This document shows positions 23,949 to 64,000 of a stretch of 64,000 bases of DNA, one piece after another. Under the pieces are notes generated by a model. It did no database searches and was not told the origin of the DNA. It worked only from the letters and a program-made list of their open reading frames with translations. Position 1 is the first letter of the stretch, and each line of letters opens with the position of its first letter. The position numbers and the translations under genes are program-made. Source of the DNA: Haliotis rufescens (lineage: Eukaryota); the NCBI RefSeq assembly GCF_023055435.1, contig NW_025963779.1, positions 22,444,001 through 22,508,000 on the forward strand, written 5' to 3'.

Positions 23949-26381
23949 ATGGATGAGTGTCAGCGGTCAGTCTTACAGCGCCACTTCAAGCAGCTGGCCA
24001 GTGACCTCATGTTGTCGGAGGACCTGCTGGGGGACTTGTATCAGCAGCACATCTTTGACAGGAACATGATCGACATCATCAGGGTGAGAATATTGTGTCA
24101 CATATCTTATTTCCAACATGCAAGCTTGTATTTTTCAGAATGTAAGCCATAAATCAGAGGTGAACCTAAGTTAAACATAACAAATCTGCCAAGACATAAC
24201 ACTGAAGAAGCAGAAGTGACTGAGAGAATATTGTTTTGCACAGTCAACAATGCATAATTATATAACAGTTGCCTAACACACTGGACCTGAAAAACATGTG
24301 GTTAACACAAATACTGATCTATGCCAACAGTATATTATGTATTACACTTGCATCCAGAGCAGATAATTTCATAAGCATTATCATGAATTGATGACATTAT
24401 ACTAATCCGTAGCATGACTTGACGGTCATAATATCCATGTTCATCAGCCATCAATCTAAGCATGATATGGTGATCAAAGTTGTCCCAACTTAAGGTTCCA
24501 TGCGAGAAAAAAGTAACTAAGAATGAATATTGATTCAATCTTTGTATTATTTAAGGCATAGTCATGGACTATGAGATGTGATTGAGCTATTATCTGTGTT
24601 TCTCTATAGAGCCAAGCTACAGACAGCGACAGGGTGTACAAGATGCTAGAAATGCTTCCTAAACGTGGACCATCTGCTTTTGACACTTTCATCAACATCA
24701 TCCAGGACAGCTACCCATGGCTAGCCGCCATGCTGGATTCTAGCTACTTGGCCGCAAAGAGCAAACACCAGCCGAGTTCAGGTGGACAGCATTGCAAGCT
24801 GGAGAGGCTGTTCACCGTCACAGGTAAGTCAGGGAACAAGGGAAACAACTCTTTACAGCATAGCTTAAACAGTTTGTAGCCATTGAGACTACTCTTTACA
24901 AAATAAGGTTGGATCACATTTCAAGAATCAGCACAGCACAAAATGTTTTAATTCTAAACTCCTTACGATTATTTTAAGATCAGTCCTTAGTTGGTTTCAT
25001 GGATTTGTTCTTCGCCTCTTTAGCTAACTATTAATAATAGCTAATTATGGTATTTATGAACATGTGCAAACATTATCAGCGCATCACTTTCTTCACTATC
25101 CTAGAACTACCTATATCACTATGGAGAATATCAAAGAAGAACTATCAATATTCATGGGAATGGGGGAACAGGTGATCACTTATAGATAAAGTGAATTGCC
25201 AGGTGAAGGCAAATATTCCTTATAAATAATGAATGTGATCAAGAAATACTTCTGTCACTACTTTTCAGTAAAGCTAATTGCATTTGTATAAATAGCAAAC
25301 ATTGTCTTGATAAAAAATCCCAGACCAGTGTGTGTTAATTATTTGCAGATTGAAAAAGAATAATACCCATATGACAATAAATGTATTCTTCTTTATTTCA
25401 GACGCACCTCAACATCAAGATAAACCAGACTGTGACATAAGGAAAAGAGTTGGGACATTTGTCCACAAGCAGTTCGGTCAGAGTAAGAGGGTCTCCCAAA
25501 ATGATAAAAAGGCAGTGGAAAGGTTTCTCAATGAACAGCTGAATGATGAAAGGATTCGACTTCAGTCTCTGGCAGAGAAAGCAGAATCTCTCCCAGACAC
25601 AGAAACCGAATCTGTGGTCTCTCAGGTTAGTGATGTTCAGCAAAAACTGTTTGAAATCCATGTCATTCTAGAGCCATACCTCCAGGGCAAGGCACTTAAA
25701 GAATTCAACAACCTCCTTCCAGAAGACATGACCTTTGAAATCATCCAAAAAGAAATCAGATCGGTTTTGGAAAATCTGAATAGAGCTGAGAAAGAACTCA
25801 CTGAATGTTCTAAGCTGCCTGGGCTTCATGGGGATGAGGAGGACAAATTGCCATTGTGCAGTTACATAGAGAAGTTGATAGAAAAAGTTGAGGATCAGCA
25901 AGAGAAGCTTCAAAGTCAGGAAACTAGACTGACAGAACTGCAAGGAGAACTGAATGAATACTCCATCCATATCGACAAACTAGAATCTGAAAGAGAAACT
26001 TCTAGGAGTAAGATACAACTTCTATCCAAGGAAGTGTCTCAGGTCAGACATGACAAATTCAAGTTGGAGGAGAGAAACGCCCAACTTGAAAAGATTCATC
26101 AACAACATCTTGAAAAGGAAAAGACTCTAGAGAATCTGAAATCAGTTGTGAGAGAACTGCAGGCATCAAAGACTTGCAATAGCAGTGGTAACATAGATGA
26201 CAGTCAGAATGTCCGATCACGGGAGGTAAATGGACTTCGGAGCAGTATAATAAGACGTACCTTCAGGACAACGGGGGAAAGGTTTGGAAGGACAACACCA
26301 AAACCCATCCATAATTACCAGCTGGCCAGAACTAGATACACGGTCAGGAATACAACCAAGAAGAAGGCAAATTTACCATGA
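23949..26381 (+). CDS. CARD-coiled-coil protein, paralogue A (442 aa); exons 23949-24083, 24610-24823, 25402-26381
   Basis: Canonical GT-AG introns in phase 0 and phase 1 splice into one open frame. The CARD reads MDECQRSVLQRHFKQLASDL...IDIIR|SQATDSDRVYKMLEMLPKRGPSAFDTFINIIQDSYPWL (caspase-2/RAIDD-type LPKRGP motif). It is followed by a long coiled coil and an R/T-rich tail. Confidence 0.9.
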
Positions 26382-27781
26382 TAGAAGCGTTAACCATGTA
26401 GCAAAATATTCCAAAATGACATGCATTATGAATGTGTTTGTGGTGCCACAGGTAGGGAAGGATATGGTCAGCTTTTCGTGAACATGTGGCATCATTACTA
26501 TTTGATAGTCATTAAAAAACATTCTTATGATATAGTTGACATTGTACAACAGACTCTGCTTCTTTGAGATTTCTTTTGATTATGGAAATGGTACTTGTTA
26601 CTTTTATCTACAAACAGTATGTGTATTGCTGCCAAGTGACAGACATGTACTGATGGGGACACCCAAGATTGAGCATTACAGCTGGTGTCTGTGTTTGGAA
26701 TCAACCCAATCATGTTGTAACAAGACACAAGGCTACTGTAGCACACCAGCACAGGGACAGCCATGATTAGCATCACTGATAGGAGTATGAATTGCTCATA
26801 TCTGGAACACAACAACCAGTCCTGATACTTATCTGATGTTTTGTATTCAATCAGTTTTTAATGCTGTTAAGGAGTTCATTTGTTTGTGTTGAGAGTGATA
26901 TATTTCACAAGTCAACATTATTAGTCAAGAATAAAAAAATCTTTCAGTTTCAATCAGTCATGCAATGTGTACAATCAAGATATGTCATGCCTTCCATTTC
27001 AAATCAAATAAACAAATATGTATTGAAGTATACTCAATGTCATCATGTCAACACAAAGCATCACCAACCTGCTTCAGCTTCATCTTATCATTCATCGTGT
27101 TTGTTCTGAATTTGAGGAAACAAAACATGTCACAAGACACCAAATTAAATGCAGATCTATAATAGTGTAATGTTGAGTGAGTTGGCTACTAGCTTGTGCA
27201 ATTTGTATTTGTTAGTTCCCAACATATCCATATTCAGATCCATTGCAAACAGTGAGTCAAACAATAAAAAATGTCAACAACTCGTTTTCTGTTCTAATTC
27301 GTTTCTTATCGTATAATATGTCTATCAGGTATTGAAAAGTGTCCACAAGAGCAGTAGACTCTCTGTTATCCGACAACATTATCAGTAAGTGCTGACAGCT
27401 TGATAAATGGCAAGTCTATTCTCTCTTTACAAATTACCAACATCCAAATGTATATAACCTTGAATAGAAAATGATTACTTAGCATTGCAAATTCACGTGT
27501 TTCAGGTTTATTATAGTTCATGCAGTTGATAGCCTTTTGTTCTCAAACCACCACAGTCGTACCTTATCAAGATGAAGTCGTACAGTCACACTAACTCGTT
27601 TGACAAATGATTGCTCCAAATCTATATTTAGGCATGACTAAATGCACCTGTAATCCCCCGGCATACATAAGTGTTCCACAGGTACTGCTAGGAGTCCACT
27701 AAGCCACCTGACAGTTACGTAAAATAAATGACTTTCTGCACATAACTGTCATATATCTCTATCCCACATTATTCTTGATTA

Positions 27782-27950
27782 GGGGCGGTCGGGTAGCCTA
27801 GTGGTTTAAGCGTTAGCTCGTCACGCCGAAGACCCGGGTTCGATTCCCGACATGGGTACAATGTGTGAAGCCCATTTCTGCTGTCCCCCGCCGTGATATT
27901 GCTGGAATATTGCTAAAAGCGGCGTAAAACCATACTCACTCACTCACTCA
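27782..27950 (+). mobile_element. tRNA(Asp-like)-derived SINE family B
   Basis: Head tagcctagtggtt...gtcacgcc...ggttcgattccc, (actc)n tail and perfect TSD attcttgatta. Confidence 0.92.
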
Positions 27951-27981
27951 TTCTTGATTAGAGTGGAAAGTACTGGAGTTT

Positions 27982-28210
27982 TGATTGTTTAGTTTTTAAT
28001 GTTGCACTCAGCAATATTCCAGGTATATGATGGAGATCTGTAAATAATCAAAACTGCACCAGACAATCTAGTGACTTACATCATGAGCACCGATCTATGC
28101 ATTTGGGATATTTTGACATGCATCAATCAAGACAGTGAGCCTGATCCTCCGTTCACAGAAGTTGCCTCTTATGACAGGCATGGATTGCTGTAGACCAATT
28201 CTAACCCAGA
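27982..28210 (-). mobile_element. SINE-like family C copy, diverged
   Basis: Core cactcagcaatattccag...gcctcttatgacaggcatgg. Confidence 0.75.
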
Positions 28211-29403
28211 ATAGAGGAGATATGATGAAGGGAATTCCATATTTGTATCTCAACCTCAGTGAAGTTGGTCAAGAAAAATATCCTGAGGACATTTCATGAT
28301 TTTAGCAATTATTTATAGGACATTCTTCTATACCATTTCCAAACTTGAAAAATATCCTCAGGGCAGTTTGGATGACAATCAGACAATGTCCTTGAAAATG
28401 AATTGATCTGAGCACTGCAACCAATACTCAAAACACATCTTCATAACAAGAGTCATCAGAAGATGACATATCCCCCCAGTCTGGTGCAATTTGGAAATGG
28501 AGTTTGGCTACTTATACTCCACTTTTGGCTCATTGCCATTAGATACCTTTGTTCAACATGTCCTTGATAGAGTTTTGGCTACCAAAGTAGCATGATACAG
28601 CTAAAAGACAACATACAAATTATTGCAACAGGCAAAGAAATAGTTATCTAAAGGATAAATGAATAGTAATTTAATTACAATTTCCCTTCTCTGCCATAAT
28701 TATAGTACCTATAATGCAAGTCTAAAAAGTAATAATAAAAATTCACACACATACTTACCGGTATATATCTGTTCTCTACAGATGAATTATTTTCAACAAA
28801 TTGACTTAAAGTGTATGGCAGCCTAATTTGCCAAACAAAATAATGCTGTCAGTATTTTTCAAAATCCCAAATCATCAAAAGGCACCAGTTCACCACTAGA
28901 CTGATCTGTATAACTAGTTCCACAAGAAATATCCAATGGTTTTGGACTTCTGATTCAGAAACGAAAAATGGATATATCAACAGACTGCCAGCGGACAGGC
29001 ACGCTGATCGCCATATCACCCTGTTTTTCAAATCTGGGGAATAATGATGACCTTGGGTTCCTACAAAAAAGTAGATGCATGAAGGTTGATAGTCCTTGCA
29101 CCACAACTCCAGGAAATACATCTCCCACTCAAGTAATTTGTGGACAACATCCAGAACAGAAGCTCATTTTTATTGGATAATTATCACCTGGTTACAATGT
29201 GCTAGATTTTGGTTGTTGGACATTATATTATGGTCGCTTATATATAGGTAGAACTTTAGTATTCCCTGATATATCTGTACAATTAGATAATTAAAGCAAA
29301 TATGGCAACAATAAATGAGTTATTACATGTTCATCCACACTTTTCAAAACTTAGTTGACAGTCATTATATTTTGTTTAAAACAATCTGTTAAGGCATAAG
29401 CGG

Positions 29404-33343: not shown

Positions 33344-33517
33344 CAGTACACTATGGTTATTACGAACTCAAAGGGACCACTGATTTAAGTTCGATATAAA
33401 CATAGTTCGTTATAAGCATATATACATGTATAAACAGCAAATGGTCGGGACCAAAAAATATGTTCGTTATATCCGTCAGTTCGTTATAAACATGTTCGTT
33501 ATAAACGTAGTTTACTG
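33344..33517. mobile_element. Tc1/mariner-pogo-type MITE
   Basis: TA|cagta...tactg|TA termini and repeated gttcgttata motifs. Confidence 0.75.
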
Positions 33518-34111: not shown

Positions 34112-36540
34112 ATGGAGAAAAACCACAAGTCTACCCTGCAGTTCTTCCATGTCAAATTGATGCTTGATTTAAGGGTGAATGAAATGTTTCTCGCACCATT
34201 CCTACAGAAGGGAGTTCTGCATGAGGGTGACATCGAGGAGATTCTGGTAAGTAACTAAACACATACCACAACGCTTTGTAGTCCATATAAAGCTGAGTTT
34301 CATTATTTCTAAATCTAGTTATTGTGTCATATTGTTCAAGATATACTTGTCCTATGTAGTCAAGCTTGACTGCAACTCGTTCGTTTATTAATATTTACAT
34401 GACAAAGCTGTGGTTATCCCACCAGTTCAAACTCAATCCCTTCATGGAATATATTTAAACAATGGTGGTAAAGAACATGATTGAACATATTTGTAGTCTG
34501 ACCCAATAGGTTAATCAGGTTTAATCAAGTATCTTAAATCAAGCCCTGCAATAGATATGTCATTTACAGAGTGGGCCAACTTCAAATGCCAAGACTGCCC
34601 AATTCCTCTCTATTCTGCCAAAATGTGGACCACAAGCATATGATGTCTGCATCCTACAACTGAAAGATGTATATCCTTGGATTGCTGAAGAAATGGAGGC
34701 GTCTTTCAACAAACTGGCACCAGTTATTGACTACAACAATCCCGGTATGCTATGAGAGGAAACAATTATTGTGAAATGAGTTGCAGTAAATATATATCTG
34801 AAAACATCACAATATGGATCCAACCACTGCCACATATTTGACGAAAGTATCTTTCTTATTTGAGTTATGGCTCTTATAGATCTAAATTACACCTAAAATT
34901 ACACCATGGTCTATGAAATGAGGTTGGTTGGTTGGTTGGTTGGTTGGTTAACGCTGCACTCAGCAATATTCCAGCTATATGACGGCGGTCTGTAAGTAAT
35001 CGAGTCTGGACCAGACAATCCAATGATTGATATCATGAGCATCAATCCACGCAATTGGGAGCGATGACATGCATCAACCAAGTCAGATACCCTTTCTAGT
35101 CAGCATTTTCAGGGATCCATTCATATAATTTTCATCACTGTTTTGCCTTTTGCACCCAATGGAATCAATTTTGGTGGATACTCAAGACTCAGTTAATATT
35201 TTGAATTCAAAATTTATTTCATCAATAACATGTTGACAAAAAGCTAACCATGCTATATATAAATTAAATGACAAAATATTTCTTTTTAAACATTGCAGTG
35301 TTTGGATTCCTTGACAACAAAGATTGTAAGAATGACCCACTCTCAATATCTGACACCTCAAACACAATTATCTCCAATGGGGAGAGAAATACCAAGACAA
35401 ATTGTTCCTTCCATGAGGAGAAGAGCAGCATGGTCAGAGAACTGAAACTGATTGTAGCTAGAGTTTATAAAAGGCTTGCAGTGTATTTAGACAGCAGAGG
35501 TGTGAAGGAATATGATCTGGCTTTGTCCGAAGTCCCAGAGGACATTCTGGAGGTAGTTGTTAGTGAGATCATAGAAATAATATCAAATCAAGACACAACT
35601 CTCTTGGCTATCTCAAGCCTATTTACCCAAGAGGAAAAAGAAGCCAACAGTTTGTATGAAATCATACAGGGTATGAAATCTAATATTGAAAGCATGGAGA
35701 GGACACTTGAAGGCATGATTGAGATGGAAAGGAAACTAAAACGGCTTGAAGAAGACCAACAAGAAAAAAATAAATACATAAAGTTGCTGGAAAACTGCAC
35801 TGAAAATTAAGCTGGATGAGATTGAAAAGCAGAGAAAACAAGAATCCCTCATGGGGAGGAGATTCGACAATGAGGGACACAGTCAACATCTACATGTACA
35901 AGGGCATGGCTGTAATGATGATACACCCAAGTTCATGAAGGGGAGTGAAACTGCTAGGACAAATGAGTCTGATGCACATGGACAAACTCACCATTTCCAC
36001 ACTGATCCATCTACTGGTAGATGTGAGGTGCATATTACACTGACCAATATCCACAAAACTACTGGAAAAATAAAAAAGAGCCCTAGACCAGTCGACAGAC
36101 TCAGTCAAAGACCATCAGGTCAAAATACATCCTGATGCCATTTTCTGACTCCAAGCAATCATCAAGAGAAGCTTTCGATAGGTAACAGGTCAACAGCAAT
36201 GCCGTTGATGACTGCAGCCCTGGTTAGACCACAAAGTGCAAATATGTCTCTGACCAGTGTAAGGAGACCAGGAACTACAATCAGCAGAGAGGTAACTGGA
36301 GATTCACTGAGGGGCGTCTACAGGGACTCCAGATCTGTGTCTGCTAGCCAACAGTCCAGCTCATCCTTGAGATCCAAGGACATCAGTTCAAGCATTGATG
36401 GATTCCAGCAGAGACCCTCTTGCTATCAGAAACATCACAAAACAAAATCCACAAGAATTTATGTTTTACAATGTCGGACTTCTCCAAAGACCTCATCTAA
36501 GATATTAACCAAACGTAAATCAATGCAATGGCGCTATTGA
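34112..36540 (+). pseudogene. CARD-coiled-coil paralogue B, truncated or pseudogenised; exons 34112-34246, 34570-34744, 35299-(35810 stop; ancestral end 36540)
   Basis: The CARD exons are intact (MEKNHKSTLQFFHVKLMLDL...IEEIL|SGPTSNAKTAQFLSILPKCGPQAY...YPWI) with canonical splice sites. Exon 3 aligns by eye to paralogue C but has a frameshift near 35791-35794 and an in-frame TGA at 36133-36135. As written it encodes 273 aa. Confidence 0.8.
34922..35087 (-). mobile_element. SINE-like family C copy (5'-truncated) in intron 2 of paralogue B
   Basis: (ggtt)n followed by the family C core. Confidence 0.85.
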
Positions 36541-41327: not shown

Positions 41328-43068
41328 ATGAATGCCAAAGAACGGTTGACTCTGCAGAAGTTCCACAATGTGTTGGTTGAAGGTATCATGCTGAGTGAGA
41401 CTTTCCTTGGAGAGTTCATAGCACAAGGGATTCTAGATCTCGACCTTAAGGAGGAGATCACAGTAAGTCTTTCAGCTCCACTGTCTGGCAGTGAATAGTG
41501 CAATATGCAACTCTCAAATTGTTCAGACTTGTTGATTTGAAACATCATCCATGAACAAACAACTTTAAGGTTCTTTTTTAACATCAAATTGTACCATTTC
41601 TTGTGACATTAACATTCTAAACATGCAATGTGAAACAATCGATAAAGCCAAACCAATTTCTTGTTTTACAGAATATCTTGCCAGAAAGTTTGCTAAAGTC
41701 AAACTGAAGATACAAAGTTGTGTTTGATTTGAAATATACATTTTTATACATTGATTATTAGTTTTCTTTAAATTATAAATGAAACCATATATATGGGGAA
41801 AATGAAATGTATATCCTTTACATGGACTCTTCTAAATTGATCATCATTTCAGCCTGGAAAATCTTTTAAACAGGAAACAAAATTTATCTGGCCTAAAATT
41901 AAAATTATTTGGTTATTCTCAATATCAAATGACTATATAATTTTTAATTTCTGAACAATAGTTTTCAACAACAAAAAAGCCTCTCCCACTCCATTCCTCT
42001 TTAACATTGAATGGTCAGTTCCGAATGTAATTGTTTTCAACTACTTACAAAGACGATCGATATATTTTAGTTTTGCAGATATTTATCCAGCATGCCAAGC
42101 CAGGTTAGTGAAGTTGTATGCATAGAGATTACTGCAACTCAGACATGGGTAATAAAAATAGACATATCACATTCAGATGTCATAGATTTATTGAAGGGAT
42201 AATCTCACAGATGACATTTAAAGTAAATTACAGATATAGATATATCCTAGTGACTGTGGTATGCACCTTTACCACGTTACACACACATCTCAATGGACAT
42301 GAAGGAAACTGTTTTTCATCTTGGTATGTAGTTTCAGGGGATCCTGGAGTCATTGATTCTTTCCAGTATTCAGTATAATCAGTAGTTGATTATAAAGATG
42401 CCCCAAAATTAGGGTATCATTTGGTTTTTTATTCTTAATTTTCTATTACTGTACAATATAGTTGTATGGTATAGTGAAAATTGGTTTGGTCAAGTATATT
42501 TAGTACCATATTTGGTTTTCACACAAACATGTTTTCACTGAATTTTTATTGTAAATCAAACCTACATGCAGTCCATGACTCACCAGTCCAAAGCTGAGTC
42601 CTTCTGTCTAGGCTAATAATAGTCATTACATTCAGACTAAAATCTTATTAAAAAAGAAGAAGCCGAAAGACATGTTCATGCCAGTAGACACTAGTCGTGG
42701 ATCAGCAATACCGGTAGACAGGTAGACAGGTAGACATTGGTCCTTGATGCCTATACAATGTACCAATAGTCTTGGCTCAGTATCTGATAAATAAACATTA
42801 TTTAACAAACACCATAAGTTAATAAAAAAATAATTTACATTCCAAAGTTAGGATTTTTACTAAGGAGTGATTTAATATTAAATATTTTTAAGAATTATTT
42901 CTCACAGTTTAGTTTAGGAATGTGTCATGATTACTAATTACTACTCTGCATGAACATAATTACACTGAAATGTGAAAATTTATGTTTCAATTTCAGTTGG
43001 ATTTAATGGATTTAAACCAGTGACTATTTTACATTTTTTTAAATATTAAACTGAATATTAGACAATAA

Positions 43069-43140
<72 letters not shown>

Positions 43141-43267: not shown

Positions 43268-46200
43268 GCATTGCATTATATGAAAATAACACTACTTTGC
43301 CACACAGCAGTCATGTGTATTGCCAATACCCAGGTCTGGTAGACACTAACATTTAATATTTTTTAACAAAACATTCATATGACTTGAAATTCTGTGGTCA
43401 AGATTTTCAACTAGGAATAAATATCAAAAGTGGGACAACAAACTTGCATCGAATATGCATCATAATCATAAAAAACATAGTTTGTAACATTTTCTGATCA
43501 TTTTCAAGATCTGCATTTTTAGTTTTAGGTTTAAAGAAGCATGGGGTGATGGGACAATCTGTATATATGTATATGTTCAGTTATTGACTGACTAATTGGT
43601 ATTCATGGAAAATAAATTTTAAATATAGGCATTTATTTTGCTCATTTCTTATATACATCAAACAATAATGTTAATGAGTCATTGACACTGGACATGCATA
43701 TTTATTGGTCTCACCAATAATGAGTGTGTGAGTATGTTTTTATGCCGCTTATAGCAATATATCAGCAATATGAGGACAGGGGACACCAGATATGGGCTTC
43801 AAACATTGTATCCATGTGGGGAATGAAACCCAGGCCTCTGATGTGACAAGAAAACGCTTTTACCACTTGGCTACCCTACCTCCCCCTCACCAGTAATGAA
43901 ATACCTAACAAATGAACAGACAGTTTAAATTGAAAACACATTCTTGGGACAGGCATTGATTTACATTTCTTATAAAGCATTTGTTTACCATTATATGCTT
44001 CGTTCATTAAAACTCCACAGGACTGGTGAAATTGTTTCGTAGTTCAGTACTTTTTTTTTGATTCCCCAAGTATTCATAAACATGTAATTCACAGTCATGG
44101 ATATATTTGGTACTTAAGTTTATATCCACTTCTTGGTATTGTCAAACATGAACATGTATCACAATGACTAAACTCAGTAGACAGATTGTGACCAGTTTCA
44201 TGACATGTGCTGTATGACCTGTGAAGATCCGGGTTAGAATAGGTCTTCAGCAACCCATGCTTGTCATAAGAGGCGACTATGCTTGTCGTAAGAGGTGCCT
44301 AACAGGATCGGGTGGTCAGGCTTGCTGACTTGGTTAATGCATCCCAATTGCCTAGATCAATGATATCAATCACTGGATTGTCTGGTACAGACTTGATTAT
44401 TTACAGATAGCTGGAATATTGCTAAGTGCCATGTTAAACAACAAACAAACAAATAAACAAACATATACTGTACCATGGAAACTGGTAGTGTTACTTTCTG
44501 TCCATTTCAGATAAAAACAGACAGTTACAGTGATATGGATTGAACTTGTGATTAGGTTTAACAAATAAAGCGACAAAACCATTTCCATATTCATAAGAAA
44601 TCTCTGCCAAAAATAGTCGATTGTACAATTCCAACTATATCATGAGCACGTGTTTATGAATCACTATCAAATAAACAAACCCGAGGCACAAGGCCTGAAT
44701 CTAGTAAAATTATTTTTGTTCTTAAGTTGTCTAAGGTAATAATTGTCCACTGGACTGCACTGAAAATTATGCTTAGAGCCATATTTGGGCAAGTAGACTC
44801 AAAAGGTTTTCACCCAGATTGTATCTGTGTTTGCTTTAACAATGTACTACTCCATGTTGTTTCTAAAGACCTTGACCCTAGTTTACAATATCAACTTCTG
44901 TTCATAGAGACTGACCATATGAACTGACACTGAAATATTCCATGGAGACTTGATGACAATATTTTTCAGTGTGAGGTGACCGTAGAAGCCAAGAATGCCA
45001 AGTTTCTGTCGGTCTTGCCCCGCCGTGGTCCCAATGCCTTCCCCACCCTACTGCGAGTGCTGGAGAGACAGGCACCCTGGATCAAAGATGAGTTGGAGAC
45101 ATTCTACAACAAGCAGAGACGTATGTTATCTCCCTTGTTCAACATATTGCTGTATATATTCCCATGTCTTCCACTGTAGCCAGAAGTCCAGGGCTTACTA
45201 GTGAATACTGCATTACAATGCACATCCGTCAACAAATAAACAACCCTACGTGACTCTGGACTACACCAGGGGTTGATACTATGACTAATGTTCCACTGAC
45301 ATATAATAAACAATAGCCAGGTCACACATTGTTACTCCTTAATTTCATTTTATAAAGAAAAACCTTTCTGGTGGAATCTTCTGAACATGATTTTTGCATG
45401 TGCTCTCAGTGATTGAAATGAAGGAGGTCATGGAGTCCTTCATGTTCAGTCACCCAATAAGGACCTTTCAGACACATCTATTTTGTCTATAACATGTGGA
45501 TTATGGCATGATGGATAATTTGTGTTTACTTGGTATATTCTGCTTATATTAGCATTAATATCTTCCAGGTATCGTGTACACTAGGGACGGTGATTTCGTC
45601 CCTGATGATAATACAGATATACAGCCCAGTTATGATCCTCCAAACAGAAGCCAGAGCAGTACTGTACTGGAAAAGGCAGTGCAGACGCTTGAAGATTTCC
45701 ATAACGAAGAAGATGTCAGTGTCATAAAAAGTTTGCGATCAACAATCGAGCATATCTATCTGAGACTGGTGACCTACCTCCATAGTCAAGGAATAAAGGA
45801 ATTTAACATTGTTGAATTAAACGTAACCTCTGAGCTACTAGACAGAGTAGCGAGGGAAATGTTGAATGTTGTGTCAAACAAGGACAACATACTTTCAAAT
45901 ATTTCCAGTCAATTTAGCGAAACTGAGAAGCAAATGGCAGAAAATGATGTGTGTAGCATGGTCAAGAGAGTCCTCTCAGATAAAGCATCACTGAAACATT
46001 ATCTTGACAATAAGGACTTGGAGGTGATGGAGCTAGAGAAAGAATCAAATAAAAGAATTGAAACCCTGGAGGACAAGCTCAGGCAGCTTGAGGAGAAGGT
46101 CGAGGAGAAGCAGCTTCGTGTACTAGCACTGGAGGAACAGTTGCAGGGTAAAGAGAGTGAGATCCAGAAGTTGGAAGTTGCTGACAAACTGCGGCTACAG

Positions 46201-47073
46201 GAGCCACTGTTGAAGAGAATACACAGCTTGATAGATGAGGTGTCCACCGCAAAGAGTCAGAAGGAGAAACAGATGTATCAGACAGAGCAGGAGTATCAGG
46301 ATCTGCAGAAGGATACTATTGGACTTGAGAATCTGTTGAATCAGCTGAAGGGTGTTCATCATTACCATGAACAACAGCATAGGAGTCATGAGCGGTATCG
46401 ATCTGTATCCCAGAGCATCAACAATGAGAATATTGGTAGAGATGGAAAGGTGTATCAAGGCATGTTTTCCTCTGAACAAACTTTGACTGTTGATAGTCAT
46501 TTAGGGTTTGACATGTCAACCAATAAGAATGAGAAAACTTACCAAACAAAACCCAGTAGAAGTCCCAGGAGAAGATTAAAGAGAAGTCCTAGGCCTGGCA
46601 ACATGCTAGTTAACAGGTCAAATTCAGACACTGTGCCTACTTCGCCAAAGCAGAAAACACCTCGATACCAGCAACCAATATTTAGTAGGCAAGTTTCAGA
46701 ACTTCACCTTGATAACCGATCAACATCAAGACAAAGTACAGATTTCCTTAGGTCAGTGTCAAGACAAGGAACAGACTTGTCCAGATCTGTATCCAGACAG
46801 GCTACTAATTTCTCTTTGAAAAGCAGCACTATGTCTATGCCATACACAAGCCGCCAGGGCACAGAACAGTCTCTCATGAATGGACACCAGTCCCGGACAT
46901 CAGTCAGATCTGAAGACATTGACCCTCTTGCATCTGCTAGACAAACACCTCGTGATAGTCCTCAACTACAATTAATGACCAGATCTGAAAGTGTTAGGTC
47001 AAATCCAAGGCAAAATCGTGCCACATATCAGACAAGAAGGGAAAGAACATGTCGTCTACTGTACATGAGGTGA
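41328..47073 (+). CDS. CARD-coiled-coil protein, paralogue C (596 aa); exons 41328-41462, 44970-45120, 45569-47073
   Basis: GT-AG introns in phase 0 and phase 1 give one open frame: MNAKERLTLQKFHNVLVEGI...KEEIT|CEVTVEAKNAKFLSVLPRRGPNAFPTLLRVLERQAPWI. A helical domain, coiled coil and Ser/Arg-rich tail follow. Confidence 0.9.
43074..43263. repeat. (TA)n and (TCTA)n microsatellites within a local duplication
   Basis: Seen directly; ataattacactgaaatgtgaaaatttatgtttcaatttcagttggattta and tgaaagcattgcattatatgaaaataa each occur twice nearby. Confidence 0.9.
43722..43885 (-). mobile_element. SINE family B copy, diverged
   Basis: Collinear with family B; TSD ctcacca(a/g)taatga. Confidence 0.85.
44217..44461 (+). 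mobile_element. SINE-like family C, near full-length copy
   Basis: gacctgtgaagatccgggttagaa...gtcgtaagagg...ctggaatattgct...(aaac)n. Confidence 0.85.
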
Positions 47074-53284: not shown

Positions 53285-56200
53285 TCTTTGGTTGATCGGT
53301 AATGGGTTGGTTGATCTGTCGTGGTTGTGGTTGATTTGTAGTGGGTTTGGATGATTTGTAGTTGGTTTGGGTGATCCATAGTGAGTATGACTGATCTGTT
53401 GTGGATTTGATTGATCCGTAGTGTGTTTGTGGTTTTGGTTGTTTTGTAGTGTTTGGTTGATCCAAAGTGGGTTAGTTGATCTGAAATGGGTTTTGTTGAT
53501 CTATAGTGGGTTGGTTGATTTGTAATGGGTAGGTTGATCTGCAGTGGGTTTGTGGTTGTGGTTGATCTATTGTGGTTTGGTCGGCCAATAGTGTGTTTGG
53601 TTGATTCATACTTGGTTTGGTTGATCTGTTGTGGGTTTGGTTGATCAATAGTTGGTGTGGTTGATCCAAAGTTGGTTTGGTTGATTTGTTATGGGTTTGG
53701 TTGATCTGTTGTTGATGTGGTTGATCCAAAGTTGGTTTGGTCGATTTGTTATGGGTTTGGTTGATCTGTTGTGGGTTTGGATTATTTGTTACTGGTTTGG
53801 TTGATTCATAGTGGGTTAGGTTGATCTGTTGTGTGTTTGGTTGATCCATAATGGGTGTGGTTGATCTGTTGTGTGTTTGGTTGATCTGTTGTGTGTTTGG
53901 TTGATCTGTAGTGAGTTTGGTTGATCTGTAGTGTTTGTGATTGATGTGTAGTGTGTCTTAGCTGAGCAGAGTTTTGTTTAATATGTCATCAGTGCGTTTT
54001 GACAGGTTGGGCCGATATGAAGTTAATTTTGTTGATCAGATGTGATTTTGGTTGATATTGAGTGTTGGTTATTTCTGAACTGGGTTTGGTTTATTTGTTA
54101 TTGGATTGATTGATCTATAGTTATAGTTTGATTGATCTGCATTAGGTTTCATTATTTAGTGGTGGATTTCATAGGTTTGTTGTAGTGGATTGGTTTAATA
54201 CGTATGTATGCTTGGTTGGATCTGTAGATTATTTGCTTGATCTATAGTGTGTTTGGTTGATCTGTAGATTATTTGGTTGATCTGTAGTGTGTTTGGTTGG
54301 ATCTGTAGATTATTTGCTTCATCTGTAGTGTGTTTCGTTGGATCTGTAGAGTATTTAGTTGATCTGTAGTGTGTTTGGTTGGATCTTTAGATTACTTGGT
54401 TGAACTGTAATGTAGTGGTCGGATCTGTACACTATTTGGTTGATCTGTAGTGTGTTTGGTTGATCTATAGATTATTTGGTTCATCTGTAGTGTGTTTGGT
54501 TGATCTGTAGATTATTTGGTTGATCTGTAGTGTGTTTGGTTGATCTATAAATTATTTGGTTGATCTGTAGTGTGTTTGGTTGATCTATAGATTATTTGGT
54601 TGATCTGTAGTGTGTTTGGTTGATCTATAGATTATTTGGTTGATCTGTAGTCTGTTTGGTTCATCTGTAGATTATTTGGTTGATCTGTAGTGTTTGGTTG
54701 ATCTATAGATTATTTGGTTGATCTGTAGTGTGTTTGGTTGATCTGTAGATGATTGGTTGATCTGTAGATGATTGGTTGGATCTGAAGATTATTTGATTGA
54801 TCTTGAGTGAGTTTAGTTTGATCTGTAGATTATTTAGTTGAATTCTAGTGTGTTTGGTTGGATTTGTAGATTATTTGGTTGATCTGTAGTGTGTTTGGTT
54901 GATCTGTAGATTATTTGGTTGATCTGTAGTGTGTTTCGTTGATCTGTAGTGTGTTTGGTTGGATCTGTAGATTATTTGGTTGATCTGTAGTGTGTTTGGT
55001 TGATCTGTAGATTATTTGCTTGATCTGTAGTGTGTTTGGTTGATCTATAGATTATAAGGTTGATCTTTAGTTATTTTGGTTGATCTGTAGATTATTTGCT
55101 TGGTCTGTTGTGTGTTTGGTTCATCTGTAGATTATTTGGTTGATCTGTAGCCAGTTTGGTTGGATCTGTGGATTATTTAGTTCATCTATCGATTATTTGG
55201 TTGATTTGTAGTGTGTTTCGTTGATCTGTAGTGTGTTTGATTGGATCTGTAGATTTTTTTGTTGATCTGTAGATTATTTGGTTGATCTGTTCTGTGTTTG
55301 GTTGGATCTGTAGATTATTTCGTTGATCTGTAGTGTGTTTGGTTCATCTGTAACGTGTTTGATGAATCTGTAACGTGTTTGACTGATCTGTAGATTATTT
55401 GGTTGATCTGTAGTGAGTTTGGTTGGATCTGTAGATTATTTGGTTGAATTCTAGTGTGTTTGGTTGGATATGTAGATTATTTGGTTGATCTGTAGTGTGT
55501 TTGGTTGATCTGTAGTGTGTTTAGTTGATCTGTAGATTATTTGGTTGGATCTGTAGATTATTTGGTTGATCTGTAATGTGTTTGGTTGATCTGTAAATTA
55601 TTTGGTTGATCTGTTGTGTGTTTGGTTGATCTGTAGTGTGTTTGGTTGATCTGTAGATTATTTGTTTGATGTGTAGTGTGTTTAGTTGATCTGTAGATTA
55701 TTTGGTTGATGCGTAGTGTGTTTGGTTGGATCTATAGATTATTTGGATGATCTGTAATGTATTTGGTTGATCTATAGATTATTTGGTTAATCTGTAGTGG
55801 GTTTGGTTGATCTGTATTGTGTTGGTTGGATCTGTAGATTATTTGGTTGATCTGTAATGTGTTTGGTTGATCTGTAGATTATTTGTTTGATCTGTAGTGT
55901 GTTTGGTTGATCAGTAGATTATTTGGTTGATCTGTAGTCAGTTTGGTTAGATCTGTAGATTATTTAGTTGATCTGTAGATTAGTTGGTTGTTCTGTAGTG
56001 TGTTTGGTTGATCTGTAGTGTGTTTGATGGATCTGTAACGTGTTAAGCTGATCAGTAGATTATATGATTGATCTGTAGTGAGTTTGGTTTGATCTGTAGA
56101 TTATTTAGTTGATCTGTAGTGTGTTTGGTTGGATCTGTAGATTATTTGCTTGATCTGTAGTGTGTTTCGTTGGATCTGTAGATTATTTGGTTGATCTGTA

Positions 56201-58080
56201 GTGTGTTTGGTTGATCTGTAGATTATTTCCTTGATCTGTAGTGTGTTTGGTTGATCCATAGATTATAAGGTTGATCTTTAGTTATTTTGGTTGATCTGTA
56301 AATTATTTGCTTGGTCTGTTGTGTGTTTGGTTCATCTGTAGATTATTTGATTGATCTGTAGCCAGTTTGGTTGGATCTGTAGATTATTTAGTTCATCTAT
56401 AGATTATTTGGTTGATTTGTAGTGTGTTTGGTTGATCTGTAGTGTGTTTGATTGGATCTGTAGATTTTTTATTGATCTGTAGATTATTTGGTTGATCTGT
56501 TCTGTGTTTGGTTGGATCTGTAGATTATTTCGTTGATCTGTAGTGTGTTTGGTTCATCTGTAACGTGTTTGATGAATCTGTAACGTGTTTGACTGATCTG
56601 TAGATTATTTGGTTGATCTGTAGTGAGTTTGGTTGGATCTGTAGATTATTTGGTTGAATTCTAGTCTGTTTGGTTGGATATGTAGATTATTTGGTTGATC
56701 TGTAGTGTGTTTGGTTGATCTGTAGATTATTTGGTTGATCTGTAGTGTGTTTGGTTGATCTGTAGATTATTTGGTTGGATCTGTAGATTATTTGGTTGAT
56801 CTGTAATGTGTTTGGTTGATCTGTAAATTATTTGGTTGATCTGTTGTGTGTTTGGTTGATCTGTAGTGTGTTTGGTTGATCTGTAGATTATTTGTTTGAT
56901 GTGTAGTGTGTTTAGTTGATCTGTAGATTATTTGGTTGATGTGTAGTGTGTTTGGTTGGATCTATAGATTATTTGGATGATCTGTAATGTATTTGGTTGA
57001 TCTGTAGATTATTTGGTTAATCTGTAGTGGGTTTGGTTGATCTGTATTGTGTTTGGTTGGATCTGTAGATTATTTGGTTGATCTGTAATGTGTTTGGTTG
57101 ATCTGTAGATTATTTGCTTGATCTGTAGATTATATGGATGATCTGTAGTGTGTTTGGTTGATCTGTAGATTATTTGGTTGATCTGTAGTGTTTGGTTGAT
57201 CTGTAGATTCTTTGGTTGATCTGTAATGTGTTTGGTTGGATCTGTAGATTATTTGGTTGATCTGTAGTGTGTTTGGTTGGATCTGTAGATTATTTGGTTG
57301 ATCTGTAGTGTGTTTGGTTGATCTGTAGATTATTTGGTTGATCTGTTGTGTGTTTGGTTGATCTGTAGATTATTTGGTTGATCTGTAGTGTGTTTGGTTG
57401 GATATGTAGATTATTTGGTTGATCTGTAGTGTGTTTGGTTGATCTGTAGATTATTTGGTTGATCTGTAGATTATTTGGTTGATCTGTTGTGTGTTTGATT
57501 GATCTGTAGATTATTTGGTTGATCTGTAGTGTGTTTGGTTGATCTATAGATTATTTGGTTGATCTGTAGTGTGTTTGGTTGATCTGTTGATTATTTGGTT
57601 GATCTGTAGTGTGTTTGGTTGATCTGTAGATTATTTGGTTGATCTGTAGTGTGTTTGGTTGATCTGTAGTGTGTTTGGTTGATCTGTAGATTATTTGGTT
57701 GATCTGTAGTGCGTTTGGTTGATCTGTAGATTATATGGATGATCTGTAGGGTGTTTGGTTGATCTGTAGATTATTTGCTTGATCTGTAGTGTGTTTGGTT
57801 GATCTGTAGATTATTTGCTTGATCTGAAGTGTGTTTGGTTGATCAGTTGTGTGTTTGGTTGATCTGTAGTGTGTTCGGTTGATCTGTAGTGTGTTTGGTT
57901 GTATCTATAGATTATTTGGTTGATCTGTATTGTGTTTGGTTGGATCTGTAGATTATTTGGTTGATCTGTAGTGTGTTTGGTTGATCTGTCGATTATTTGG
58001 TTGATCTGTAGTGTGTTTGGTTGTTCTGTAGATTATTTGGTTGATCTGTAATGTGTTTGGTTGATATGTTTTAGTTTTTG
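53285..58080. repeat. 4.8-kb satellite of 20-bp monomers forming a 40-bp dimer
   Basis: Alternating tggttgatctgtagtgtgtt and tggttgatctgtagattatt units; more degenerate at the left end. Confidence 0.97.
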
Positions 58081-58310
58081 TTTGATTTTGAATAAAAGTC
58101 TAACTTGGCACGTGACTTTGGCGTTTACCACTTTGGTGGAAACCATTAGCACAGTTATAGTGCTTTCAAACCAAGGATCATAATCAGGGTTATGAACCCA
58201 TGGTCAGTGGAGCCTTGCACCAGCCAGGGAGGCAACTATGAATAGCAAATTGGGATAACCATGCTCCTTGATCTGTGTGGCTTTGGTTCATCATTTGGAG
58301 CAAGTGGGTG

Positions 58311-58430
58311 AATGAATTTTGTTTAATGCCACAGGCAGCAATATTCCAGCTATATCACGAGAGCCTGTAAATAATGGAGCCTGGACCAGAGACTGGAAGC
58401 ATGAGCAACCACACAATCAGCCAAGTCACA
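58311..58430 (-). mobile_element. Degenerate family C fragment
   Basis: cagcaatattccagctatat...ctgtaaataat...ctggaccaga. Confidence 0.6.
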
Positions 58431-58502
58431 ACACCCAGACACCAATTAGGCAGCTCTGACAAAGCATGTTGCACTGGAGGCAGTAACTTTTCACTCAGTA
58501 AC

Positions 58503-58662
58503 TGAGTGAGTGAGGTTTTACGCCGCTTTTAGCAATATTCGAGAATATCATGGCAGGGGACACGAATAATGGGCTTCACACATTGTACCCATGATGGGAA
58601 TCGAACCCGGGTCTTCGGCGTGACGAGCTAACGCTTTAACCACTAGGCTACCCGACCGCCCC
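58503..58662 (-). mobile_element. SINE family B copy
   Basis: Near-exact reverse complement of 27782-27950. Confidence 0.9.
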
Positions 58663-61600
58663 TAAACTGTAGCCCTAACACGCCATAATTTACTTACAGC
58701 ATCACATCTCTTATGGCAGCCCCAGGATGGTTTTTCTTGTAGGTTCGAATCTCAGATTTGTCCAGATTCTTATGCATGTGTTCCAGCATCATGATACCCA
58801 AGCTTAAGGGTTTCATAAAAGTGGTACCTTTCCATGACTTTATCTTTCCTCTCTCATTAAGCTGACAAAGTGTGACTTAAGAACTGTATTAAGTACATTA
58901 ATTAACTTTAAACACTTCAAAATATTATGGAAGCATTAGTGTAAAGTAATGAATCAGTAACGATATCTGATTACTTAGTGATGGTTCTCATCTATTAACA
59001 AATTTTATCAGATGGTTATATACTACTCAAAAGAAGTTAAAGAACACCCATTTTTTATATGGGTCAGTAATATAAATAAATTACCAAAGTCATATAAAAC
59101 AATTGGGTGTTCTTTAACTTCCTAGTTGTATATTTTTAGTACCTGCTAAAATGTTGAATTAACTCATTAAATAACTAATATAACTGATCAGTTTTCCAGT
59201 TCTGTTTGCTGTGAGAAGTCCTGTTTAATATTTCTGTTTACTAGTCATATATCAATGTCAAGCTTACGGCTATCCTTCCTGTCATGGGAACTGAACTTGA
59301 AATACATTGACAGGTTTTAGCCAACAGATTAAGTGAAGATATCACTACACTTCAACACATGAGATGAACTGAAGCTGTGCATAATATGTAACCTAATCTT
59401 CAACATTCCTATATTCACTGGGTTTCTCCTTGTCTGTCTGCTATTCACCAGCTCCAATCAAAAGCCAACAAAAATTTCAAAGAACAGGTAACAGTTGCAA
59501 TGTCACGCGACACTCACAATAAAAAAGCTGACAAAGCCTACAAGGTCCCCACAAAAAGGTGATCATGGATCTATTTGTTGGTCACACACTGAAGCTGTAG
59601 ACTTACAATGGACAGGCAAAGATCAACTTTGAAACAGTTGAGCAGTACAAATTGATCACTGATAACACCTCAAAGAGATTGCAAAGTCTTCTGATCGTCA
59701 AACCCTTGCCTTGCACATGACAACTGGCAATTACTGAACTGTTGTTCATGACCCCATGACCTCTGGTCCCACCTCCCGTAACTTGAAGAGTAATTACTGA
59801 ACTAAGCGACTGGTAGTATACCTTGATATTTACAGTAAACTACCTACATGAGAATACCTGTAATCAACACAGAAAATAATGAATGCAAACTTTGATAAAA
59901 CATAAGTGAAATCAGGAAATATTCTTCAATGGACTAAACATTGTAAATAGCAGCATTAGGCAAATATTCTAACCTTGAAATGTTTATTTTTGAGTATCCA
60001 GCTAATGGCTTCTGTGTGTTTTCCAAGGTGACACATACATCAGAGTCTTATACTCCTTACAAGGCTAACTTAGATTATGAAAAAATTTCTTTTATAAAAT
60101 ATTTTTTTCAAAAGAACCTTCCCTCTTCTGCTGTTTTCATAGACTGTGGGATCAAGGAAACTAGACTTGCCTTGGCTTTTAGTAAAAAACAACTAAATAA
60201 TAACTATATGCATATATATAAATTCCACAGTCATGGCGCAGGATTAACTTCTTACCCATCAGAGTGTTAGTGATGCAGGTACAATGAAGGTGAATTTTAC
60301 TCCAAAATTTCCATAAATTCTGCATGAATGAAGATAAAGCTGATAGTTAAACTATCAATTATTATTTATAACTGAAATCAAAGTGTCCTGATAAAGATTT
60401 TTTTTACATAACATCAATTAAAGTATTACTTCATAAATAAATTCACATGCATCATATCATTTGAAAAATATGCCCATGTTACATTACACCATGGTCCATT
60501 TCCTGTACCTCTACCGTGTATCCTCTGTGTTAAAAGTTTTCCAGCAGTGATCTACAATTGTCAGTATTGAATCCTAGCCACCTGATGTCTCAGTCCAAGC
60601 TGATTACAGTGATTGATAATGACAAAACATCTATACACATCTACAAATAGCCTCAGCCCCTGCATTGTAATGACAGCACGGGATTTAATTTCCAATCCAT
60701 ACGACAACCCTGTGTCGTGGCCACGATTCCCAGGCATTCCGTGTGTATCATGGGTAATACAGTAAGCATGGCGAGATATGAGTTATGATCCAGGTATCTC
60801 TATTGCATGTTGTCGATTGGCTTGGCAAAGGTTTGGACTCAAACAAGGCAGTCAGTGAAGCGATGTAGCACTGATCCCTTGCTGACGACGGCCTCAGTCA
60901 GGGTGTTTCCATGTAGAGACTGAAGGACGAAGGACGAGGGGAATATACGAGGTGAGGTAACTTTGAATGTTTGGGTGAAAGAAAATAATTCTTTTATCTT
61001 ATTCTTTTTTAATCTATTCATATGTTAAAACTAAAACAATGGATGACTAAAAACATGAACTTGGGACAAAATGAAAAAATAACCATCAACACATCACTTT
61101 GAAGTACTGGTTGTGTCTTAGTGATACAAACCCAATGTTCATTCTTACAATGTTTAAGTGTTTTAATAATAATGTTTGTAACACTCCAATGAATGTGTGT
61201 GAATGTATCAAGTTTCCAGTAATGAACTAATAATATATTTTTCTGCTGTATAAATATACAGGAAGAAAATTGAATTTCTAGATACTGTGTTTGACCAAGT
61301 ATTTTCTATAAAGTTTATTTTAAACTATTTACAATTGTTCCAAACAAGTTGTTTCTTGGCAAATCAATTACTGCTATTTGACAAACTTTGAGAAGTATTG
61401 ACTCGGAACCACTTAGAAAAACGATAAGATTAACCTTTTACAGGTCACTGATATAGATTTCTGATTACGAAATGTCTTAGTCTTTACATGAGATATCTTA
61501 ACAAAACCAATCAACATATTGATTTCAAACTTGAAGGATTAGCGCTTCCAATTCACTGATCCTTGTTGATATCTTCACTGTACATGTAAAATATACTAAC

Positions 61601-61699
61601 AAAAATCTTTATCACATCACGTTTATGACAAAGCAGGATGTTGCCTAAAGTCTGAAAAAGTTCAAATTTATCCACAGAGTGACACAAGTCCCCACCAAG

Positions 61700-64000
61700 A
61701 TGGAGGAATCTGAGAAGAGGGTTCTTGGCCAGTACCGACATCGTCTTGCTAATGAAATAGTTGTCACTGAGAGTTTTCTGTGTGCGTTCTGTGAGAGCAA
61801 TGTACTGGACAAGGAGATGTCCGCTGTAGTTCAGGTCAGTACAGTCATCTTCTGATCAGTTCAGTAGTGACGGTCAAATTGATTGAAATTATGGAAGATT
61901 TACTGGAAGGTCCAAATTACAAACCATTCAAAAGCAATTTGCAATAATCAAAGACAAACAATTTTGCATCCGTCAAGTCCTGAGATAGTTTTGTTATCCT
62001 GAGAAGGTTATTATTAGTAGTTAATACTTGAAGCAAAACATGAGAAAGAGTGTGGCCAGTGTCTATATTTAAAAATAAAGTCCAGAAGTAAATATATATG
62101 TTTGTTTTTGTCAGATGTGATCTAGTTCTATTGAAAATTACATTTTTAAAAAGCAAAATGACATTAATCATTAAATCTTGATGCTCAATCGATTGAGACA
62201 ATCCAATCATCAATCATGATTATACAACTAATTCCCAACACTACAGATCAGTAACCAGAATCATGAAAGTAACATGTCATCTTATAGCAACACAAGTATT
62301 ATCAATTTTCAGTTATCAATACATTCAAATGTTGATAATTACTTTTGCCAACGAGTATGTTTTGCGCACCGGTATATGGATATAAACAGAACTGAACCTG
62401 TGTGGAAAATATTCCCCTTATAACACCTTTCCAAATACATTCCCTTATAACACCTTTCCAAATACATTCCCTTATAACACCTTTCCAAATACATTCCCTT
62501 ATAACACCTTTCCAAATACATTCCCTTATAACACCTTTCCAAATACATTCCCTCCTAACACCTTTCCAAATACATTCCCTTATAACACCTTTCCAAATAC
62601 ATTCCCTTATAACACCTTTGCAAATACATTCCCTTATAACACCTTTGCAAATACATTCCCTTATAACACCTTTGCAAATACATTCCCTTATAACACCTTT
62701 CCAAATACATTCCCTTATAACACCTTTGCAAATACATTCCCTCATAACACCTTTCCAAATACATTCCCTTATAACACCTTTCCAAATACATTCCCTTATA
62801 ACACCTTTGCAAATACATTCCCTTAAGCTATAGCTTAAAAGAAAGTGTAATGGTTGCGTGAGTATACTTTTATTGTCAACATCAAGTTAGTGAATCGTAC
62901 TGATACTTCAGAATGCAAGGCCCACAGGAAGTTATGTATTCCTTGTGTTCCAGAATGAGCTGACTTATGTGATCAAGGCACATTGGGATATAATGTATTC
63001 CTTGTGTTTCAAAATGAGCTGACTCACATGATCAAGGCACATTGGGATATAATGTATTCCTGGTGTTTCAGAATAAGCTGACTTATGTGATCAAGGCACA
63101 TTGGGATATAATGTATTCCTGGTGTTTCAGCAGAATAAGCTGTCACTCACGTGATCAAGGCACATGGGCATATCATGTATTCCTTGTGTTTCAAAATGAG
63201 CTGACTTATGTGATCAATGCACACGGGGATATCATGTATTCCTTGTGTTTCAAAATGAGCTGACTTATGTGATCAATGCACACGGGGATATCATGTATTC
63301 CTGGTGTTTCAAAATGAGCTGACTTATGTGATCAATGCACACGGGGGTATCATGTATTCCTTGTGTTTGAAAATGAGCTGACTAATATGTTCAATTGATC
63401 AATGCACACAGGGATATCATGTATTCCTTGTGTTTCAAAATGAGCTGACTTATGTGATCAATGCATACGGGGATATCATGTATTCCTTGTGTTTCAAAAT
63501 GAGCTGACTTATGTGATCAAGGTACATGGGCATATCATGTGTTCCTGGTGTTTCAGAATAAGTTTACCCATCTGATCTAGGTACATGGGGATATCATGTA
63601 TTTCTGGTGTTTCGGTATAAGCTGACTTATGTGATCAAGGTACATGGGCATGTCATATGTTCCTTGTGTTTTTAGAATGAGCTGGCTTATGTGATCAAGG
63701 CCCACAGGCATGTAATATATTCCTGGTATTTCAGAATGAGCTGACTGATGTGATCAAGGCCCACAGGCATGTAATATATTCCTGGTATTTCAGAATGAGC
63801 TGACTGATGTGATCAAGGCCCACAGGCAAGTCATGTATGCCTGGTGTTTCAGAATGAGCTGAGTTACGTGAGCAAGGCCCACCGCCTGCTGGAGCTGCTG
63901 CCCAAGAGAGGCTACAAGGCCTTCACCACCCTGCTGGAGATCCTGTCCATAACCAACCCCTGGCTGGCAGAGAAGATGAAGACTAGCTACATCGAGGAGA
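61700..64000 (+). CDS. CARD-domain paralogue D, 5' part only; exon 61700-61834 and exon 63853 to window end
   Basis: A 45-codon exon MEESEKRVLGQYRHRLANEI...SAVVQ ends at cag|gtcagt. After the acceptor tttcAG at 63852 the frame reads NELSYVSKAHRLLELLPKRGYKAFTTLLEILSITNPWLAEKMKTSYIEE. Confidence 0.88.
62410..62825. repeat. 27-bp minisatellite (about 15 units) in intron 1 of paralogue D
   Basis: Unit cccttataacaccttt(c/g)caaatacatt. Confidence 0.95.
62905..63883 (+). repeat. 59-bp minisatellite (about 16 units) made of the intron-1/exon-2 junction of paralogue D
   Basis: Unit tcatgtattcctggtgtttc(ag/aa)aatgagctgacttatgtgatcaaggcccacaggc; the last unit is the true acceptor and exon start. Confidence 0.92.

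Follow-up and report, generated by a model that had tools for sequence, protein, structure and literature searches.

We analyzed a 64,000-bp stretch of the Haliotis rufescens genome (positions 22,444,001-22,508,000 of NW_025963779.1, contig C1 of a 1.33-Gb assembly; hereafter the window) that carries a tandem cluster of four CARD-encoding genes, here called A, B, C, and D. A first-pass annotation, made from the letters of the window, had described four same-strand genes that each begin with a 45-codon first exon followed by a phase-0 intron and that each carry the motif L-P-[KR]-[RC]-G-x-x-A-[FY] in a second CARD exon. Both parts of this description were borne out. In a six-frame scan the motif had exactly four matches, all on the plus strand, at 24655, 34615, 45015, and 63898, and of six candidates in 44 kb for an ATG followed by 45 open codons and a GT, four were mutually similar, each lying upstream of one motif exon. 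Intron 1 is in phase 0 and measures 526, 323, 3507, and 2018 bp in A, B, C, and D, respectively, as had been claimed, and its acceptors, at 24609, 34569, 44969, and 63852, each have an AG preceded by a pyrimidine tract. The second intron is in phase 1, and its donors and acceptors were located for A, B, and C. Database proteins, with RefSeq models of H. rufescens and H. cracherodii among them, reproduce the predicted junctions (P0041 for A, P0048 for B, and the orthologs P0001 and P0016 for C and D); the exons of A and B are 100% identical to the RefSeq H. rufescens proteins, and exon 1 of D is 93% identical to the H. asinina protein P0016. All coordinates are collected in Table 1.

The exon architecture had also been called identical in all four genes. 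The first exon and the intron phases are indeed common to them, but D has four coding exons rather than three (exon 2 ends in phase 1, and the last two exons lie ~720 bp apart), and the architecture of the cluster is therefore shared rather than identical. Similarly, the junctions of the phase-1 intron that was said to lead into a long terminal exon in A, B, and C were located in all three, but the terminal exon of B stops early. The reading frame of B ends at 35808-35810, with RefSeq annotating a protein of 273 amino acids, and beyond this stop lies S/R-rich, tail-like sequence in another frame, the end of which is collinear with the C terminus of C. The early stop and the out-of-frame tail remnant therefore identify B as a truncated or decaying copy. 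Intron 1 of D also contains two minisatellites. The 59-bp unit of the first, present in ~16 copies, holds an acceptor and the first ~39 nucleotides of D exon 2, with the last copy providing the real acceptor at 63852/63853, and intron 1 of D therefore contains many decoy acceptor sites. The second, a 27-bp unit in 15 copies with 97% identity, gives rise to long spurious open reading frames (ORFs) on both strands.

Table 1. Positions of the cluster genes and other features, numbered from the first base of the window unless a contig is named.
Feature	Position	Strand	Details
345-codon ORF	7601..8638	+	coiled coil, Cys/His-rich C terminus
Gene A			LOC125378222, XP_048249300.1 (P0041), 442 amino acids
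Gene A exon 1, 45 codons, first half of CARD, phase-0 donor GTGAGA	23949..24083	+	P0041 residues 1-45, 100% identity
Gene A exon 2, second CARD half (LPKRGPSAF...YPWL) and linker, phase-1 donor cag/GTAAGT	24610..24823	+	CARD positions 42-83, 28.7 bits
Gene A exon 3 to stop: post-CARD motif DIRKRVGTFVHKQFGQSKRVS, helical region, coiled-coil helix (residues 268-377), basic tail (isoelectric point 11.8)	25402..26381	+	
Gene B			LOC125378224 (P0048), 273 amino acids
Gene B exon 1, 45 codons, donor GTAAGT	34112..34246	+	
Gene B exon 2, second CARD half (LPKCGPQAY...YPWI), phase-1 end	34570..34744	+	CARD positions 43-84, 19.3 bits
Gene B exon 3 to premature stop: helical region and start of coiled coil only	35299..35810	+	29% identity to C residues 109-284
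Gene B tail remnant, other frame, TGA at 36133-36135	35811..36540	+	weak: 25.6% identity, E 0.001, P0002 residues 421-588
Gene C exon 1, 45 codons, donor GTAAGT	41328..41462	+	
Gene C exon 2, second CARD half (LPRRGPNAF...APWI), phase-1 end	44970..45120	+	CARD, 22 bits
Gene C exon 3 to stop: helical region, coiled coil, 224-residue S/R-rich basic tail	45569..47073	+	97% identity to H. cracherodii P0001
G/T-rich satellite between C and D	53288..58069		~4.8 kb
Gene D exon 1, 45 codons, donor GTCAGT	61700..61834	+	
27-bp minisatellite in D intron 1	62415..62825		15 copies
59-bp minisatellite	62934..63882		~16 copies
Gene D exon 2, cut by window end	63853..64000	+	runs on contig to window-equivalent 64048, alternative donor 64078
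Gene D exon 3, past window end	~65070-65545 (window-equivalent)	+	
Gene D exon 4, past window end	~66266-66772 (window-equivalent)	+	
CARD-caspase gene (C610:896001-906000)	exons at 2880-3011 and from 5032 within that stretch		CARD caspase-9-like by PDB match
Death domain	C379:2749486-2749698	-	best PDB match CRADD death domain, E 8e-8

To identify domains, Pfam was searched exon by exon, and full-length data were taken from the database proteins P0041, P0048, P0001, and P0016. The second exons of A to D match CARD positions 42-84 with E values between 1.4e-6 and 1.2e-3, exon 1 of A matches positions 2-40, and the full-length proteins of A (51.8 bits) and of the D ortholog (37.0 bits) score above the PF00619 gathering cut-off of 23.9, as do the relatives described below (37-64 bits). 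No domain besides CARD was found in the long exons or the full-length proteins; in particular, A to D yielded no PF00531 death domain in any exon or full-length protein and no PF00656 peptidase C14 domain. The first-pass annotation, which had seen no catalytic or nucleoside triphosphatase domain, is thus in agreement with the profile searches.

The subtype of the CARD was assigned with a family profile built from 13 members and run against the PDB, from which the best 60 matches were listed (last E 0.053). The profile aligned end to end with the RAIDD CARD at 77.6 bits (E 1.2e-20), leading by 40 bits the next matches, caspase-9 (36 bits), CARD8 (30), BCL10 (22.9), and Apaf-1 (18). CARD9 and CARD11 chains, several of which exist in the PDB, were absent from the best 60 matches listed. 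Gene C searched alone also gave RAIDD as its first PDB match, and in the profile alignment the LPKRGPxAF...YPWL of the family corresponds to the RAIDD signature. An AlphaFold2 (AF2) model of A, computed with a family alignment, placed the CARD at residues 1-97 with a predicted local distance difference test score (pLDDT) of ~90. This domain matched the caspase-9 CARD over 98 residues (Z 17.1, root-mean-square deviation 1.2 A, 29% identity, template modeling score 0.85-0.90), and in fold searches with Foldseek and VIA-align the CARDs of CARD9 and CARMA1 ranked far below those of caspase-9 and Apaf-1. These data indicate that the CARD of A to D is a RAIDD/CRADD-like six-helix CARD, as the first-pass annotation had proposed from the motif, so the family is not a relative of CARD9/CARMA and resembles it in layout alone. 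The earlier suggestion that the likeness to CARMA might be convergent fits this result.

Beyond the CARD, the AF2 model of A contains a disordered linker, helices at residues 125-141, 149-177, 187-210, and 228-253, and then a single long helix of ~110 residues (268-377, pLDDT 95-97) followed by a disordered tail. The tails of the family have isoelectric points of 10.2-11.8 and consist of S, T, R, K, and P to ~50%, which together with the long helix agrees with the coiled coil and basic S/R-rich tail read from the sequence at first pass. When two copies of A residues 262-380 were modeled together, they formed an in-register parallel pair with i-to-i contacts and heptad spacing. The interaction prediction score from aligned errors (ipSAE) of this homodimer was 0.51, compared with 0.00 for the best of three controls; among proteins with solved structures, 21 of 30 one-chain pairs and 0 of 23 single chains attained the mark used for this score. 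Three runs shared at least 97% of contacts, and the partner pLDDT was 85. The modeling thus supports, but does not demonstrate, self-pairing of the predicted coiled coil of A. A single-sequence AF2 model of C was poor (pLDDT 50) and was set aside.

In the A type, the helical region after the CARD also contains a motif, D-x-D-I-K-x-x-V-x-x-F-V-H-K-Q-F-G-Q-S-K-R-[IV]-S, that is strongly conserved from a brachiopod to gastropods. Fold searches gave only generic coiled-coil matches for the long helix and no Foldseek or VIA-align match for the helical region (residues 125-253), the lists being filled by the CARD and the long helix, and an ESM Atlas search with the post-CARD part returned generic coiled-coil clusters only. 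Comparison of the B/C with the A/D alignments by hhalign produced a significant match over the CARD only, so common descent of the remainder rests on the intron phases, the order of the elements, and the adjacency of the genes. Upstream of the cluster, the window holds a 345-codon ORF with no CARD and no significant Pfam match, residues 25-84 of which resemble the family post-CARD motif weakly (D-D-D-I-Q-R-R-V...E-R; hhalign E 0.0025, probability 12%). It may encode a CARD-less relative of the family.

Relatives were sought in 1.84 billion representative proteins, all of which were read, as well as by profile search and by cluster look-up. Full-length relatives were found in other abalone (Haliotis cracherodii, H. 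rubra, and H. asinina), in further gastropods (Gigantopelta, Patella, Babylonia, Elysia, Plakobranchus, Aplysia, and Biomphalaria), in bivalves (Mercenaria, Ruditapes, Mactra, Saccostrea, Mytilus, Pinctada, Potamilus, and Dreissena), and in the brachiopod Lingula. The A type occurs in Patella, Gigantopelta, Babylonia, Elysia, Plakobranchus, Aplysia, at least seven bivalve genera, and Lingula, and the D type in three gastropod lineages, Haliotis, Babylonia, and Biomphalaria; B and C look restricted to Haliotis. The idea of a lineage-specific family, put forward in the first-pass annotation, is contradicted by this distribution of the A and D types. The description of the family as uncharacterized stands: its members are labeled "uncharacterized," "CARD domain-containing," interaptin-like, CRADD, or other wrong names, and a literature search found no paper describing a CARD-coiled-coil family. 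Among the wrong automatic names are DNA ligase 1 in Lingula, DNA N6-methyl adenine demethylase in Biomphalaria, keratin type II-like in Mercenaria, and myosin-7-like in Ruditapes (records P0022, P0023, P0032, and P0046). Two members share a contig in each of Dreissena, Ruditapes, and Pinctada, a hint that local duplication has recurred. Full-length family proteins of relatives are encoded on Logan contigs that are very short (425 amino acids on 1,303 nucleotides in one example), which suggests that these contigs come from spliced transcripts and hence provides indirect evidence of transcription.

A maximum-likelihood tree with Lingula as its root places A within the conserved type found across molluscs. 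D groups in one clade with the Babylonia and Biomphalaria proteins (support 100/99), and the A/D split is therefore older than the radiation of gastropods. B and C, both on long branches, pair with each other (99/98); the union of this pair with D (84/94) is flagged as possible long-branch attraction. The paralogs share 30-37% identity within the CARD and 14-26% outside it. The family as a whole is of old origin and widely spread through Lophotrochozoa, with A as its ancestral, conserved copy, D as an old gastropod paralog, and B and C as fast-evolving copies seen in Haliotis only.

Across the 1.33-Gb genome, family matches were confined to the four cluster loci. Six-frame searches also gave at least 91 other CARD matches, nearly all single-exon, along with 107 caspase-domain and 91 death-domain matches. 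Many of these death-fold and caspase matches lie in tandem arrays; examples are contig C605 for CARDs and C13:27.8-28.6 Mb for caspase fragments. All of the caspase-domain matches listed lie away from the window, the closest on its contig at a distance of ~10 Mb. On contig C610, the first exon of a multi-exon CARD-caspase gene comprises 44 codons and ends at a phase-0 GT, and the CARD of this gene is split between Pfam positions 1-40 and 42-83. This is the same place as in A to D, which ties the family CARD to the initiator-caspase CARD lineage; inheritance from the initiator-caspase/RAIDD CARD lineage is thus the simplest explanation for the arrangement of 45 codons plus a phase-0 intron, which is not special to the cluster. 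Further CARD-caspases of this genome are placed at C1:32.49 Mb, C1:73.98 Mb, and C223:42.77 Mb. The C610 gene was considered as a fifth family member and dropped, being a CARD-caspase, and weak family matches on contigs C445 and C379 were dropped as unrelated single-exon CARDs. Contig C379 also carries a death domain that, within the PDB, matches that of CRADD best. A RAIDD-like CARD lies 9 kb from this domain on the other strand; on its own strand the closest CARD is found 14 kb upstream and has Apaf-1 and CARD9 as its best matches. Other CARD loci of this genome, the latter among them, thus do yield CARD9 among their PDB matches.

The repeat content of the window extends to a G/T-rich satellite between C and D, built on the 20-bp unit TTGGTTGATCTGTAGTGGG with higher-order periods of 40 and 60 bp, which causes a strong GC skew (+0.63) and AT skew (-0.5).

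Our preferred interpretation, which we hold with modest confidence, is that the four genes belong to an undescribed lophotrochozoan family of cytoplasmic death-fold adaptors in which a coiled-coil dimer presents CARDs to a CARD caspase. The parts follow one another as a RAIDD/caspase-2/caspase-9-type six-helix CARD, a disordered linker, a short helical region, a predicted coiled-coil helix of ~100 residues, and a disordered tail that is basic and contains much Ser, Thr, Arg, and Pro. The coiled coil would hold two or more CARDs side by side, and these paired CARDs would recruit a CARD partner, most likely a caspase-2-like initiator CARD-caspase, bringing the protease domains of the caspase together. 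The linker and tail are probably regulatory. What the data show are the gene models, the CARD and its subtype, the order of domains, the modeled dimer, the spread among taxa, and the order of the duplications. The partner and any link to immunity are inferred, and the proteins may either activate or block that partner; the hetero-oligomerization, CARD filament nucleation, and immune role raised in the first-pass annotation are likewise putative.

Several comparisons with known systems bear on this interpretation. CRADD/RAIDD shares its CARD type with the family (77.6 bits; LPxRGPxAFDxF...PW), and both are small adaptors without an enzymatic domain; CRADD, however, has a PIDD-binding death domain, in place of which A to D have the helical region, coiled coil, and basic tail. 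Aplysia is reported to possess a canonical CRADD, LOC101855728 (PMC9334734), from which its family member LOC101846089 is distinct. The prodomain CARDs of initiator caspases (caspase-2, caspase-9, CED-3, and Dronc) are the best structural matches to A to D, and the abalone CARD-caspase has the same CARD intron position and phase, but no protease domain follows the CARD in A to D. The CARD-CC proteins (CARD9, CARD10/11/14, CARMA) likewise have an N-terminal CARD, a long oligomerizing coiled coil (predicted in the case of A to D), and a Ser-rich regulatory region, whereas their CARD is of another subtype, the coiled coils have no detectable sequence relation, and A to D lack the MAGUK part.

Several points weigh against the adaptor interpretation. 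The dimer model comes from a predictor prone to pairing long amphipathic helices, and the helical region matches neither a known fold nor a Pfam family, so part of the protein is unexplained. Because the post-CARD regions of B and C cannot be aligned to those of A and D, a mechanism common to all four genes rests on architecture rather than on sequence. A RAIDD-like CARD sequence does not by itself prove caspase-2 binding, and with at least 91 CARD loci in the genome the partner could be a non-caspase protein. Transcription in abalone rests on RefSeq models, and induction of the genes is putative.

A different role for the same parts, which we regard as unlikely, would be that of decoys or inhibitors that sequester CARD caspases or CRADD, with the truncated B as the extreme case. 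Vertebrate ARC/NOL3, ICEBERG, and COP block activation as CARD decoys, and the CARD of ARC is of the caspase-2/RAIDD type. Like ARC/NOL3 and the CARD-only decoys, A to D combine an apoptotic-type CARD with a non-globular, low-complexity C terminus and have no effector or sensor domain; ARC is also among the fold matches (Z 10.0), and B retains an intact CARD and has lost the coiled coil and tail. The tail of ARC is acidic and P/E-rich, however, and ARC lacks a long coiled coil, whereas A to D have a basic tail and a helix of ~100 residues that is predicted to dimerize. Such a conserved, putatively dimerizing coiled coil fits activators that work by induced proximity, and vertebrate CARD-only decoys are without one. 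The retention of the A type, including its post-CARD motif, from a brachiopod to gastropods also argues against decoys.

It is comparably doubtful that the CARD serves a purpose unrelated to caspases, either as the tether of a structural or trafficking coiled-coil protein or in an immune adaptor to expanded CARD receptors. Many non-caspase CARD partners would be on offer, given the at least 91 CARD and 91 death-domain matches, the coiled coil gives generic matches only, and B and C show the rapid evolution that is frequent among immune genes. Against this, the CARD subtype is nearest to the apoptotic adaptor/initiator group, and the CARD intron position is common to A to D and a CARD-caspase.

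True CARD-CC homologs are reported only from invertebrates that also have Bcl10, molluscs included (Staal et al., PMC5978004), and molluscs are reported to have CARD-CC, BCL10, and a type-1 paracaspase (PMC5978004). That A to D are the mollusc CARD-CC (CARD9/10/11/14) orthologs, nucleating BCL10 filaments and acting through a MALT1-like paracaspase on NF-kB, is nevertheless highly improbable, since their CARD9-like order of CARD, coiled coil, and Ser-rich region is outweighed by the RAIDD signature of the motif, the scores of 77.6 bits for RAIDD versus 22.9 for BCL10, the absence of CARD9/CARD11 from the best 60 PDB matches listed even though other CARD loci of the genome do recover CARD9, and the low rank of CARD9 and CARMA1 in the fold searches; we dropped the CARD9-ortholog reading on the CARD subtype given by the PDB profile match.

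Returning to the adaptor interpretation, a more specific and speculative form of it, to which we give only a small chance, makes the A type a second platform for activating caspases, present in molluscs and brachiopods and independent of PIDD and APAF-1. A signal acting on the conserved K-R-[IV]-S motif or on the basic tail would release a constitutive coiled-coil dimer of RAIDD-type CARDs, which would activate caspase-2-like initiators by induced proximity, with B and C as fast-evolving regulators or pathogen-facing variants.

If A to D were ordinary structural coiled-coil proteins, the finding would shrink to a routine tandem gene family. The family shows a CARD-plus-coiled-coil layout, best known from CARD9/CARMA, on a different CARD subtype. 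Abalone stocks suffer from withering syndrome and herpesvirus, and in these animals B and C, which evolve fast, are candidates for markers of variation in cell death or immunity. More broadly, APAF-1 and PIDD are reported to be absent from molluscs, annelids, and brachiopods, in which CRADD is treated as the only CARD activator (Krasovec et al., PMC11463336), which raises the question of how CARD-caspases are switched on in these phyla. The family described here is a conserved, unnamed or misnamed second candidate caspase activator beside CRADD, and it may be a missing adaptor for cell-death caspases in molluscs and brachiopods.

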